From Guillardia theta CCMP2712 (taxonomy: Eukaryota; Protista; Cryptophyta), in NCBI RefSeq assembly GCF_000315625.1, contig NW_005434672.1, positions 647,004 to 711,003 of the forward strand: a stretch of DNA of 64,000 nucleotides, read 5' to 3'. The notes below the pieces were generated by a model. That model did no database searches. It saw nothing but the letters and a program-made list of their open reading frames with translations, and was not told the origin of the DNA. This document shows positions 36,222 through 48,500 of this stretch, piece by piece. The translations under genes were made by a program, and so were the position numbers. How positions within the stretch are numbered: position 1 is the stretch's first letter; each line of letters opens with the position of its first letter.

Positions 36222-36684
36222 GGCTAAAAAGAGTCCGATCGTTGCAAGTCTGGGCCTGTGCCCGTAGGCTAAAAAAGAGTCGGTTTCTCTAGGCTTCTGA
36301 CCGCCCAGATCTGCCGTAGCTTCTCAAGCTACACCGACCGGGAATCGAACCCGGGTCTCGCCCGTGGCAGGGGCGTATTCTACCACTAGACCATCGGTGT
36401 GCGGGGCGCTGAAGCCCCTCAGTTCGATACCGACCACCCGTCCCTTAGCCTACATATCTCCTACTACCCCCTGATTACCCTACCCCCTCTTCTGCCTTTT
36501 CACAGGTCCGGTCTAACCCCTGCTTCCTCCTCCGTCCCGGCCCCAACCTTGCTTGTGCATGCTCGTGCCTGTGACCCGTTATCTCGCTACTAGTCTTTAT
36601 CTCAGACCTCTGAGGAGCATTCATCAAGCGCTGAGAGAATCACTTCCAAGTCGATGTCAGTCGGTAGCCGTTCAGCCATCAATG
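36222..36684. repeat. Left arm of an approximately 460 bp near-perfect inverted repeat (partner 37691-38147)
   Basis: Reverse-complement match. The ORF track shows mirror ORFs 36399..36593(+) and 37782..37976(-) differing by one residue. Confidence 0.95.
36330..36400 (-). tRNA. trnG-GCC: tRNA-Gly(GCC)
   Basis: 71-nt cloverleaf ACACCGA-TGGTCTAGTGGTAGAATA-CGCCC-CTGCCAC-GGGCG-AGAC-CCGGG-TTCGATT-CCCGG-TCGGTGT-A. Confidence 0.95.
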
Positions 36685-37974: not shown

Positions 37975-38045
37975 ACACCGATGGTCTAGTGGTAGAATAC
38001 GCCCCTGCCACGGGCGAGACCCGGGTTCGATTCCCGGTCGGTGTA
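37975..38045 (+). tRNA. trnG-GCC: tRNA-Gly(GCC), identical to the copy at 36330-36400
   Basis: Same cloverleaf with intact A and B boxes. Confidence 0.95.
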
Positions 38046-43798: not shown

Positions 43799-44476
43799 TG
43801 CGGTACAACAATGGCGGGCGATGATGGCAGAGCAGAGCTCAGCCTGGTATCACCAGGGTATCACGCTCTGTATCACGCGGCGGCGCAGGTTCAGTATAGT
43901 ATCACGCGGCCCGGGTTCCCCGGTGTCCGGCGGGCCCGGGCCCGGAGTGTGTTCGGAGCCCAGGAGCCGGCGTGAGTGTAACTGAAGTTACACTCAGCAC
44001 GAGGACTCCGGGAGGCAAAAACTCGGACAGTGTCGGGATCCGATCCGAGGCCGGGCCCGGGGTCACCGGGTCGTGACGGTCCGACGGCGCCGATCACTGC
44101 CACCGAGTCACCAGCGGTCAGGGGCCGGCAGGCCAGGCCCGGCTGAGCCAGTGGCAGCGGCATGCTAGACGCCGACGGGTGCCGTTGGGCAGTTCGGTTT
44201 TCCGTGCGGCGGCACGGCGGGCGGATTGCAACTTTCAGACTCGAATCTTGTCACGGTCAGGCTCGCCGAAGTCAGTTGCCACAAACTCAAATCGATCGAC
44301 CGTCCGCGACGACAGGCTGGCCCAGTGGCGCTACGGTGACGACGCCGTGCAGCTGTGCACAGTGACCACTGGCATGCAACAACAGCACTTATCACAAGAA
44401 TCACGGTTTTGTTTGGTTTTTTTCAGTGACTCGGTGATAGATCGCTAGAGCAGTTGCTAGGTACAAAACATAAACT

Positions 44477-44547
44477 TGCAACTCGCAATGTCAATTTCAG
44501 CCATGGCTAGTGCCTTTGAGGATGAAATATCATTCTGCGTGGTTGCA
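44477..44547 (-). promoter_or_regulatory. Eukaryotic SECIS element, type II
   Basis: Minus strand TGCAACCACGCAGA-ATGAT-ATTTCATCCTC-AAA-GGCACTAGCC-ATGGCTGAAAT-TGAC-ATTGCGAGTTGCA: AUGA/GA core, 11-nt helix II arm, AAA, mini-stem GGC/GCC, helix I. Confidence 0.88.
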
Positions 44548-44625
44548 GGTCACGTGTACCCGAGATCGCTCAAGCTGTCTCCATCAACAACTTGAAGATT
44601 GCTATGCATTCGCACGTAAACTCCT

Positions 44626-44675
44626 GTCATGATTATATCAGCACAGTCATGTCATGATTATATCAGCACAGTCAT
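44626..44675. repeat. 25-bp tandem duplication in the 3' UTR between the stop codon and the SECIS
   Basis: GTCATGATTATATCAGCACAGTCAT x2. Confidence 0.9.
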
Positions 44676-44713
44676 GCCATCAAATATGTTTCACCTTGCC
44701 TCAACTTGAAGCT

Positions 44714-45250
44714 TTAAAGCTCAGCTTTTGCCGGCTCTACGTGGCAAGCCAACGCTCCGTCGTTGTTTCCAAAGGATTCACAGGCTTTTAAAGATATGGT
44801 TGTCTCGATGGCCTGGCCGTTGGAATTTGAGCAGAAGCATCTGAGCTCTTCTTCGCTCTTGGAGCACTTCTTGCAGGATTTCAGGTACGGGCCAACAGGT
44901 AAATTCTCACAGGTCAAGGAACCCGAATCATTCCCAAACGTCATGGAAGGGCAATCAAGCAGCTTGATTGCAGCAAAAACTTTTGCACCACACGGCTTGG
45001 TGCATTTCGTACACTGCAGAGTGCCATTCTGTCATGTTACAACATCAGTCGGCGCCGACATTAGAGGGATAATCAAACCCACCGATTCTTCGATGGAGCA
45101 CCCTGAGCACGAGTCGAGGAAGGACCCAAAGGCCCTCTGCTCCAGACCCGCCTGGTTGGGGTCTGGAGGGTTTCCTCCTCCTCATGCTGACAGCACAGGT
45201 CTTATCTGCATGGCAGCGATCACGAGCACTGCGACAGCTGCTGCTCGCAT
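44714..45250 (-). CDS. Putative selenoprotein (160 aa): signal peptide, Sec23, two cyanovirin-N-like repeats, KAEL; intron 45029-45082
   Basis: gccgccATG at 45250; in-frame TGA at 45184-45182; the frame continues GGNPPDPNQ...GSFLDSCSGCSIEES|NGTLQC...FGNDSGSLTC / GPYLKSCKKC...LRCFC...FGNNDGALAC; SECIS downstream. Confidence 0.85.
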
Positions 45251-45411
45251 GGCGGCGCTTTCGTTACGGCCGACCAGCAGAGGAGTAACCGAAGGGTCAG
45301 GTGGGAGGGGTCCGATGTCTGAAGGGGGGGTGGGAGGGTGCGGGGGGAGGGGGGGGGGTACCAGGTGGCGGGTTGTGACCCGATGCGATCGTTGAGATTT
45401 GAGTGATCTAC

Positions 45412-45518
45412 GAAGAGAGAAGAGAGAAGAGAGAAGAGAGAAGAGAGAAGAGAGAAGAGAGAAGAGAGAAGAGAGAAGAGAGAAGAGAGAAGAGAAGAGA
45501 AGAGAAGAGAAGAGAAGA
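45412..45518. repeat. (AGAGAAG)n microsatellite
   Basis: Seen directly. Confidence 0.95.
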
Positions 45519-45550
45519 ATGACGACGAGGATGAGGAAACTCGGCAAGAA

Positions 45551-48500
45551 TTGAAGTGTAGCATGTTGGAGGGAGGGATACATCTCTTGAACGAATACAT
45601 CAATACAGATCAAGTCGCGAGACGACTGACATCTTCTTTGCCGTCGTTCGTTTACAAGGCCGAAAAACTATGGCACAGCGAACCGAAGAGGCCATTTCAG
45701 TTCCTCATTCAAATGAAGGATGACTGGTGCAGTCTTGTGGTGCTCTCGACGATAGTCCGATCTTCGCGCATCTTGTTTTATGTGCCACACTGTGCCTTCA
45801 TCGTTTACTTGACATCTTTCAACGAGACCATGGCTGTGAAGCATGACTACCGCGTGAAGTTCGTCGGGACTTATGAGGCGAAACATAAGGTCTCGAGTGA
45901 CATGAGAGGTTGCGATGCCTTGAGGGTGATGACGACCTTGTCGCCACAGTCGGGCCACAAGCACGCTAAAATCCGCCTTGGAAAGTTCATCGCTCAGCTG
46001 CAACACCGATTTCACTTATGGTCGATAAGAAAGACTTCCGACAAGGTCTTCACCGTCAAGACCAACAAGAAAGAATGCCAAGGCATTGCTTGGTCGCTTG
46101 CTGCGTTGCAGGAGGTGCATTGGATTGAATGTGCTCGTCCATTGTGGAAGAGAAATTATTTCTCCAAGACCAGCGAAACCCCCGGCAACCTGCTCTATAA
46201 CTTAGACCGGATCTTGGCAAGGGGCGTTAACGGGAGTGGAGAGGTCGTGCATGTTGCAGACTCCGGGCTCGATGTCGATCACTGCTTCTTCAGGGACTCA
46301 AAGCGGAGCCTCACGTACAACAAGGTCGATCGCAAGCACAGGAAGCTTCTCGTCTACTGGATCAGCCGGCATGGCGATGGCTTTGATTCCATCGGAGGGC
46401 ATGGGACACATGTGGCTGGAAGCATTGCAGGATCTCTTGAGGATGTGACGTGGCATCCTCTTGCTAACTTCAGCGGAGTCGCGCCTGCCTGTAAGCTTGC
46501 TTTCACAGACGCAGAGAGGCAGACCAGCAGCGACGGGGAAGGTCCTTTCGTGCTGGATGACATCCCCAGCAGCATCTACCTGAAACCCTACGAAGAGGTC
46601 GGAGCCCGCCTTCACTCGCACTCGTGGGGCACACAAGACTTCAGCTACACCATCGACGCACATGAGCTGGACGATTTCATCTATCGGCATCCGGACGCCT
46701 TTTTCTCCTGGGCTGCTGGCAACGATGGAGAGCAGGAGCGTTTCGGGCTCATTGCTAGCCCTGCGAGCGCTAAGAATTGTCTGAGTGTTGGAGCCACATT
46801 CGCACCCGTGGAGTCCAGCCTGCTGGCGAAAGAGGATGGAGGAGAGGTATGTATCTTTGCCGCTCCTCCTTTCCCTTTGACCTGGCATGGCAGACTCTGT
46901 CTAGGATGAGCAGGAGGCAGATGGCGGGCGACCCCTCACTCTTCAGCAACGCACATGTGCTCTCCTTCAGCGCTCGCGGTCCCTGCAAGGATGGAAGACT
47001 CAAACCAGATGTGGTTCTCCCGGGGCTTCTCCATAGCGCTCGTTCCAACGGCAGGGCCGTCAACGCCAACTGCTGTCTGCATGCTCTCTGCAACTCGACA
47101 ACCAGGTGAGCCAACGCCTCAAGTAGCGCGAGTGAGAGCCTCGCAGCTGTCCAAGCGACTGCAGCGGCAAGGGCACATGTCAAGAGGTTGGGGGAAGTTG
47201 GCGATGCCTCTGTGAAGTCGGGTTTTGTGGCACAGACTGCTCCTTCCCGAATGATCGACTCTCCTCGAATTCTTGCTGCCCATCTTCTCCGCCAACCTCC
47301 TCCTCCTCCTCCTCCCTGTGCGGATCGTTGCTAAAAGGAACCTGCGTCAATCTGCAATCCTCGGCCAATTACATCTTCGATTTCTGCCAGTGCCGAGAAG
47401 GTCAAGTGGGAAACGACTGCAGCCAGACGGTGCAGGAGAAGCTCGCGACGTTGACCAAGATGGGAACTTCTATGGCTGCGCCTGTGGCTGCAGGGCTCGC
47501 TGCCTTGGCTCGCAGCTACCTGGGTGAGTCCTTGAGAGGAGCGGGGCAAACGGCACGAAAGCAGCGCCTTATCTTGAGTGTAGGGTTGGGATTCTGGCCG
47601 GGAGGATTGCGAAACCTAGCGGACTCGGTCTCGCCGTCGGCTTCGCTTTTGAAAGCAATGCTGATCACAGCAGGGAGGCGAACGGAGGAAGGGAAGGTGG
47701 TGCAGATCTTTGAGGACAAGCAGCTTGCCGTCGAGGATCCTCTCAACGCAGTCAAGCTTCAAATCCTGTCTGACTGCAGCAAAGTGTTTGCAGACCCTCT
47801 CCTTCTCTGCCGTGACCTCAACGCATCTCTTGCTCTCCTCCCCAACGTGGTGCAGGGCTTCGGCCACCCCACGCTTGACAGCTTGCTGTACTTCTCCGAG
47901 ACTAGCTCCAGCTTTCCTCCCTCTTCATCCTACCTCTTCCTTGAAGATCTTCGTCCCATAGCCGCAGGCGAGGAACATTCCTACTGCTTCTACATGGCCC
48001 CTCGCATTCAAGCTCCTCCTCGTTTTCTCGCTACGCTGGCTTGGTCAGACCCCCCCGGAACTCCAGCAGCAAGTAAGCAGCTGGTGAACGATCTGGATCT
48101 GCTGGTGGAGGAGACATGCGGAGAGATTCTGCTGGGGAATTCAGTTCTATTCGAAGGTCAGCGAGATCAGCTGAACAATGTTGAACGAGTGGAGCTGCAG
48201 GACGGAGGAGGAAGATGTGCAGGTCCATTGAGGAGGCTAACAATTACAGTGAGAGGAACCCTGATCCCCTTTGGGAGTCAGAACTACTCCCTCGTTGTCA
48301 GCAGCGGCTTCCTTCCCTGCGACGAGAGCATCGCGGTGCTTGATCATATTGCTCAGGTACTTGACAGTCGCGACTGAAGTGGAGGGCAGAGGCAAGAGAA
48401 GCAGAAACATGGAAAGAGAAGTAGCAGCAACTAATGAAGCAGGCTGTAAACAGTCAAAACAGGCACGAGAGGTTGTGATGGAGTCGTTGGAGTAGGTTCA

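Follow-up and report, generated by a model that had tools for sequence, protein, structure and literature searches.

Does the 71-nt hairpin at 44547-44477 on the minus strand serve as a SECIS element, and is the in-frame UGA of the gene that precedes it read as selenocysteine (Sec) and not as stop? This is the question raised by the present locus of Guillardia theta, which was studied within a window of 64 kb (the whole stretch of DNA that was analysed). Our data indicate that the hairpin is very probably a functional eukaryotic type II SECIS element. It has the anatomy of such an element, it lies in the 3'UTR of an expressed and spliced mRNA, and both the UGA and the hairpin are conserved in relatives, the latter with compensatory changes. 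The SECIS itself is ordinary, being a typical type II RNA element. Its value lies in the gene which it certifies.

The gene and its transcript

The reading frame of the gene starts with an ATG at 45250 on the minus strand, contains a TGA at 45184-45182 and a second TGA at 45034-45032, and ends with a TAA at 44716-44714 (Table 1). Transcript evidence over 44000-45800 came from the contigs of two apparent RNA runs, the raw reads of one RNA run and one apparently genomic run. It was found that the RNA contigs (738 and 705 nt) reach from 45263 to 44401 and contain two splice joints, and the run of apparently genomic origin is unspliced and colinear with the genome. Raw RNA reads of one run cover 44366-44853, the hairpin included. 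None of the runs, RNA or DNA, shows another letter at the UGA 45184-45182. The second TGA lies inside intron 1, thus the mature mRNA contains exactly one in-frame UGA. It should be noted here that two UGA codons would be counted without the RNA data, intron 1 being 54 nt long and in frame. The mature mRNA has 160 codons, and the initial annotation had placed the hairpin on the same strand as the UGA gene and directly downstream of it. This placement holds on the mature mRNA, where the hairpin begins 95 nt past the TAA and about 526 nt past the UGA and ends 76 nt before the end of the transcript.

The product of exon 2 alone matches the Pfam family CVNH (PF08881) above its gathering score of 24.5, with 27.0 bits and E = 7.8e-6. 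From the UGA to mid-domain the frame contains no AUG, and the xEL tail at the C-terminus would be meaningless without a signal peptide. As two exon junctions follow the UGA, the mRNA would be a candidate for NMD whenever translation stops at the UGA. The 64-kb window contains none of the genes for tRNA-Sec, SBP2, eEFSec, PSTK, SepSecS and SPS.

Intron 2 contains a 25-nt tandem duplication that is missing in the close relative L001 described below. At the junction of this intron (around 44625), five raw RNA reads of run X20 diverge from the end of exon 2 of the window. Their consensus reads TGCCTCAACCAGGAGCTC... with an agreement of 0.78, and it could represent, in that strain, an allele or a paralogue whose C-terminal or stop region differs. 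Upstream of the gene, a long TCTCTTC-type microsatellite (45412-45537) separates it from a subtilase (Peptidase_S8) gene at 45551-48377 on the plus strand, which is divergently oriented and contains introns. The window also carries two identical 71-nt tRNA genes in inverted orientation and 1.6 kb apart, at 36330-36400 (minus strand) and 37975-38045 (plus strand). Their anticodon loop is CUGCCAC, i.e. the anticodon GCC for Gly, and each scores 59.6 bits in Rfam.

Table 1. Features of the CVNH gene and parts of its 3'UTR hairpin (positions in the window)
Feature	Coordinates	Strand	Evidence or remark
Start codon and signal-peptide codons (22)	45185..45250	-	diverges fast; hydrophobic and in frame in all homologues
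In-frame UGA, codon 23, following signal-peptide-like MRAAAVAVLVIAAMQIRPVLSA	45182..45184	-	RNA and DNA contigs, homologues
Exon 1 remainder: Gly/Pro-rich linker (GGGNPPDPNQAG...) and start of CVNH domain	45083..45181	-	
Intron 1, 54 nt, GT..AG, holding TGA 45034-45032	45029..45082	-	splice joint in RNA contigs of two runs
Coding part of exon 2 with CVNH domain, KAEL at the C-terminus and TAA 44716-44714	44714..45028	-	Pfam; xEL in homologues
Intron 2, 71 nt, GT..AG, in 3'UTR between stop and hairpin	44624..44694	-	RNA contigs and one raw read
Very probable type II SECIS element, made up of helix I, internal loop with AUGA/GA core, helix II, AAA bulge, 3-bp mini-stem	44477..44547	-	sequence, MFE fold, pattern statistics, models, covariation
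Helix I, outer: UGCAAC/GUUGCA	44547-44542 : 44482-44477	-	sequence
Helix I, inner: CGCA/UGCG	44539-44536 : 44487-44484	-	sequence
5' core AUGA, with GA before it	44530..44533	-	GAAUGA invariant in four aligned orthologues
3' core UGAC	44490..44493	-	sequence and MFE fold
Helix II base, six pairs: AUUUCA/UGAAAU	44528-44523 : 44499-44494	-	sequence
Helix II top: U/C mismatch, then CC/GG pairs		-	sequence
Unpaired AAA	44515..44517	-	12 nt after AUGA (11 nt after AUGAU); sequence and fold
Mini-stem (helix III): GGC 44514-44512, loop ACUA, GCC 44507-44505	44505..44514	-	sequence and fold
Remaining 3'UTR	44401..44476	-	RNA contigs of two runs stop at 44401

Anatomy of the hairpin

The hairpin had been described from its letters as a type II SECIS with a helix I in two parts, a core of AUGA and UGAC, a helix II with six perfect pairs at its base and mismatches above, an AAA 11 nt past the core and a GGC-ACUA-GCC mini-stem. 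All these parts were recovered (Table 1): both blocks of helix I pair as described, the two core strands face each other in the MFE fold, the six pairs of helix II are perfect, the mismatch above them is a U/C and the mini-stem is present. The distance of 11 nt to the AAA applies when it is counted from AUGAU. We infer that the GA of the 3' core UGAC, facing the GA of AUGA, forms tandem G.A pairs. Unconstrained folding with RNAfold gave the SECIS architecture, with AUGA and UGAC as the unpaired, facing strands of an internal loop. The fold energy of -24 kcal/mol (z = -2.85) was equalled by 3 of 200 shuffles. The core consensus of published SECIS elements is UGAN/KGAW (PMC3753652). The window has UGAU/UGAC, and thus the last position of its 3' core (C) departs from KGAW.

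The level expected by chance was estimated by a pattern scan which is our own approximation of the primary pattern of SECISearch. It requires ATGA followed by AA at a distance of 10-13 nt, then GA, together with a stacked helix II and, across loops of 2-10 nt, a helix I. In the 64-kb window the scan returned the candidate and one weak other site. With both strands counted, dinucleotide shuffles gave 0.185 loose matches per 64 kb and 0.01 matches of the quality of the candidate, figures that are somewhat favourable because the criteria were set after the candidate had been seen. The second site (41136-41073, minus strand) was rejected as a chance match, having an MFE fold that is not SECIS-like and a z-score of -0.67.

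A covariance-model match, which the initial annotation had proposed as a check, was not obtained from Rfam: the models of Rfam 15 gave no SECIS match in the window at the gathering score, nor at E <= 10 on a 271-nt slice. At the same limit of E <= 10, six homologous loci were equally without a SECIS match. The failure on the window is thus probably due to the limited reach of the model, because the homologues are missed too.

The UGA and the hairpin in relatives

A word-index protein search returned one relative only, which is about 96% identical and lies on the metagenome contig L001. It keeps the UGA, and its TAA stop is retained despite an adjacent deletion of 8 nt. Its intron 1 has 53 nt, a length not divisible by three. 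Within the coding sequence the two genes differ most in the signal-peptide codons (9.1 differences per 100 nt), which remain hydrophobic and in frame. The hairpin shows 0 differences in 71 nt, and the UTR flanks on its two sides show 5.3 and 7.9 per 100 nt. An unbroken stretch of 135 identical nt at 44589-44455, the longest in the whole gene, encloses the hairpin. The 102 nt from the UGA onward (45083-45184, minus strand) show a single base difference. Just 3' of the UGA, a small hairpin may form from GGAGG...CCUCC; it was not taken as a Sec redefinition element, as it is not evident in the more distant locus L002.

An exhaustive HMMER search extended the comparison to 462 relatives at E <= 1e-3. 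A subset of single-domain relatives shares an invariant CxxCxxxCG motif and 13 cysteines, and 24 of the best 150 of the 462 relatives end in EL (KAEL, KDEL, HDEL etc.). The proteins of the CxxCxxxCG subset have no predicted signal peptide and begin abruptly at or inside the domain. The DNA that was fetched for them explains this, as at 8 loci the coding frame extends further 5', across a TGA, and enters the codons of a hydrophobic signal peptide. The junctions read ...LQGALSA-TGA-GGGK (L002 and L003), ...SPVLSA-TGA-GGAK (L005), ...YAQSG-TGA-GGGG (L006), ...CAQAG-TGA-GGGG (L007), ...SVNG-TGA-GGKK (L009), ...VWSA-TGA-GKAK (L010), ...AVLA-TGA-GPPK (L011) and ...LAWAG-TGA-GGGG (L012). Together with the window and L001, the arrangement of signal peptide, TGA and one or two glycines is thus found in frame at 10 loci (L002 and L003 counting as one). 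The UGA loci come from different organisms, namely other protists, and the fetched homologues are 36-51% identical to the window, a range in which L012 is not scored. A CVNH domain ending in xEL is present at 9 of the 10 UGA loci; at L005 an apparent retained intron cuts the gene before its end. At L004 the UGA falls outside the readable part, the 5' end being cut at the contig edge or holding an intron, and L013 was left out, its 5' part being cut by an intron. A metagenome scan with an alignment of five sequences returned two loci only, and the Protein Atlas returned generic CVNH clusters only. Another group of relatives, in which the signal peptides are ordinary, 'LPxGSY..SC' units are repeated and xEL is absent, stands clearly apart from the eukaryote-like subfamily.

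Annotation pipelines mishandle these genes in several ways. The NCBI gene model of L011 (P0071, GCA_020536535.1) skips the TGA by means of an invented intron. An apparent Trp homologue, P0137 of L010, was rejected because its Trp is a TGA that had been translated with genetic code 4. The remaining predicted proteins of the subfamily start downstream of the UGA. No homologue with Cys in place of Sec was found among the best 150 of the 462 relatives, which are a biased sample as the proteins of the subfamily are truncated at the UGA.

The initial annotation had looked to orthologous UTRs for conservation and covariation of the hairpin, and both were found. An equivalent 3'UTR hairpin is present in three orthologues (L002, L004 and L005) with about 46-51% protein identity. 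A covariance model built from the window alone and run on six loci ranked the L002 hairpin first (E = 0.025) and that of L005 second (E = 0.79). A model from the window/L001, L002 and L005 recovered the hairpin of L004, on which it had not been trained, with E = 3e-4, and on the entire 64-kb window the three-sequence model matched the candidate alone, with no other match at E <= 10. In the alignment of four sequences GAAUGA, AA and the 3' GA are invariant, and helix II is fully rewritten among orthologues, for example from AUUUCA/UGAAAU to GCGGUGGCC/GGCCACCGC. In this alignment, which holds only four sequences and was fitted to the model, 95.9% of the cells are paired and double changes occur in 13 of the 19 pairs, a result reached by none of 500 shuffles. 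When the partners were slid by 1-3 columns, pairing fell to 24-48%. RNAalifold gave the same architecture for the four sequences, with compensatory changes in 15 of 21 pairs. The orthologues retain all three pairs of the mini-stem, of which two carry double changes, and in L004 the stem is longer. This retention supports the type II class that had been assigned at the outset.

Beyond these orthologues, the hairpin with AUGA...AA(A)...GA and a mini-stem was seen by eye in the 3'UTRs of L006, L007, L009 and L010, as it was in those of L002, L004 and L005, and L011 has an apparent GUGA version of the core. Of the five loci called by eye (L006, L007, L009, L010 and L011), only L006 and L009 have the backing of an MFE fold. 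A SECIS architecture was obtained from the local MFE folds of L002, L004, L005, L006 and L009, and that of L007 pairs the AUGA region differently. The contig of L012 ends too soon past the stop to hold a SECIS. The four-sequence model R3, run on L006, L007, L009, L010, L011 and L012, recovered none of the hairpins called by eye, and the five most distant hairpin loci lie beyond the reach of the covariance models. A relaxed pattern scan finds most of the distant hairpins; it was set aside as evidence, being non-specific with 3.7 chance matches per 15 kb.

Probable decoding of the UGA and known selenoprotein systems

The hairpin had been taken as independent support for recoding, and it does back this reading, as it belongs to an expressed and spliced mRNA with one in-frame UGA and as UGA and hairpin are both conserved. 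Decoding could proceed in the following manner. Removal of the 71-nt intron from the 3'UTR would bring the hairpin to its place past the TAA. The AUGA/GA core would then form a kink-turn recognised by SECIS-binding protein 2 (SBP2), which in turn would recruit eEFSec carrying Sec-tRNA to the ribosome, and the UGA at codon 23 would be read as selenocysteine. The product would be a protein of the secretory pathway with a signal peptide, Sec, a Gly/Pro-rich linker, a Cys-rich CVNH domain and the C-terminal KAEL, which could act as an ER-retention signal and keep the protein in the ER. By the -3/-1 rule, cleavage fits immediately ahead of Sec in some homologues and one residue upstream of that point in others, and Sec would be position 1 or 2 of the mature chain. 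The Sec residue is outside the folded domain and has no CxxU-type motif around it. Seven of the 13 cysteines are in the first half of the CVNH domain and six in the second, the extra one belonging to the invariant CxxCxxxCG. A bond between Sec and this odd cysteine is thus conceivable.

Three other explanations have to be weighed against a SECIS, and together they hold only a small share of the probability. The hairpin could be a product of chance, in which case the UGA would be a true stop, the ORF of 22 codons would be an upstream ORF or the gene would be a pseudogene, and any CVNH protein would start elsewhere. The missing Rfam match, the moderate z-score of the fold (-2.85) and the lack of a Cys homologue among the best 150 of the 462 relatives all speak for it. 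However, chance does not agree with a junction of signal peptide, TGA and Gly that stays in frame at 10 loci with identity down to about 36%, nor with compensatory changes that preserve the hairpin. The transcript is abundant and spliced, and no AUG is offered before the middle of the domain. We consider this the most remote of the three.

Read-through or reassignment of the UGA without selenium, for instance through a near-cognate or suppressor tRNA that inserts Trp or Cys, with the hairpin being a different conserved element of the 3'UTR, has somewhat more in its favour and is still quite improbable. One gene caller did translate L010 with TGA as Trp, and the recoded position falls in a flexible linker that might accept many different residues. 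On the other hand the L010 gene itself ends with HDEL directly followed by a TGA, thus TGA is a stop codon in that organism, and in the window TGA terminates 58 of the 75 ORFs of at least 150 aa, which is weak evidence that TGA is a stop there as well. The codon is strictly TGA at the 10 loci, never TGG or TGC, which argues for a decoding system specific to UGA. Moreover, the invariant parts of the hairpin are those specific for Sec, i.e. GAAUGA, AA and a GA opposed in the internal loop. It is also known that kink-turns with tandem G.A pairs exist in other RNAs, and the hairpin could be a conserved kink-turn or an element for stability or localisation unrelated to decoding, for example a binding site of an L7Ae-family protein. 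This is very unlikely, as the hairpin and the conserved in-frame UGA occur together at every locus with a 3'UTR long enough to judge, and an unpaired AA at a fixed distance and a mini-stem are features of SECIS elements and not of kink-turns in general. A SECIS that directs Sec to the UGA is therefore the reading which we prefer.

If the UGA is read in this way, we are slightly inclined to see in these genes an undescribed selenoprotein family that is widespread in marine protists, consisting of ER-retained, CVNH lectin-like proteins with an N-terminal Sec on a flexible Gly-rich arm, possibly in a selenenylsulfide with the 13th Cys of CxxCxxxCG. Through such a protein, glycan binding in the ER would be linked to redox chemistry. 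A CVNH selenoprotein family apparently has not been described: a search of the literature available to us returned no relevant paper linking CVNH or cyanovirin with selenocysteine or selenoproteins. A survey of algal selenoproteomes published in 2020 gives 42 families, three of which it calls new (PMC7539508), and the part of that survey available to us names no lectin or CVNH family among its selenoprotein families. The CVNH family may be one of the unnamed 'hypothetical protein' selenoprotein families in older surveys (PMC2375036). The Rfam SECIS model misses the whole set of these elements, and the genes themselves are lost to annotation through invented introns, genetic code 4 and starts downstream of the UGA.

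Eukaryotic type II SECIS elements are known, for example, from the mRNAs of SELENOT, SELENOK and GPX (PMC3753652). The present hairpin shares with them the place in the 3'UTR, helix I, the internal loop, the AUGA/GA core and the extra mini-helix. It also shares a helix II of about nine stacked positions and the unpaired AA(A) 12 nt from the core, and its distance from the UGA (about 526 nt) agrees with those already known. It differs by its 3' core, UGAC instead of KGAW, by a mini-stem of 3 bp only, by a spliceosomal intron between stop and element, and by a UGA that comes at codon 23 after a signal peptide. By anatomy the hairpin is of the same class as Rfam RF00031 (SECIS_1), a model that matches neither the window nor the six homologous loci.

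To our knowledge, known selenoproteins carry Sec in thioredoxin-like motifs or near the C-terminus, and an N-terminal Sec carried by a Gly-rich arm that is not part of the folded domain would be unlike either placement. SELENOF (Sep15) and SELENOM are ER-resident proteins with a signal peptide and a single Sec. SELENOM has a C-terminal retention signal, and SELENOF is linked to the control of glycoprotein folding. Both have the thioredoxin fold with Sec in a CxU or CxxU motif, whereas here the fold is that of a CVNH lectin and Sec would be at the mature N-terminus on the Gly-rich arm. In thioredoxin reductase, Sec is part of a C-terminal GCUG arm, a flexible Gly-containing extension near redox-active cysteines. 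The likeness is one of analogy only, as the arm in the present protein is N-terminal, has no adjacent Cys and gives no sign of a redox function. With the Cyanovirin-N/CVNH family (PF08881) the protein shares the two-repeat CVNH domain. The bacterial and fungal CVNH relatives in the HMMER list have ordinary signal peptides and are without the features that set this subfamily apart, namely its 13 cysteines, the CxxCxxxCG motif, the xEL tail and a UGA-encoded residue before the domain.
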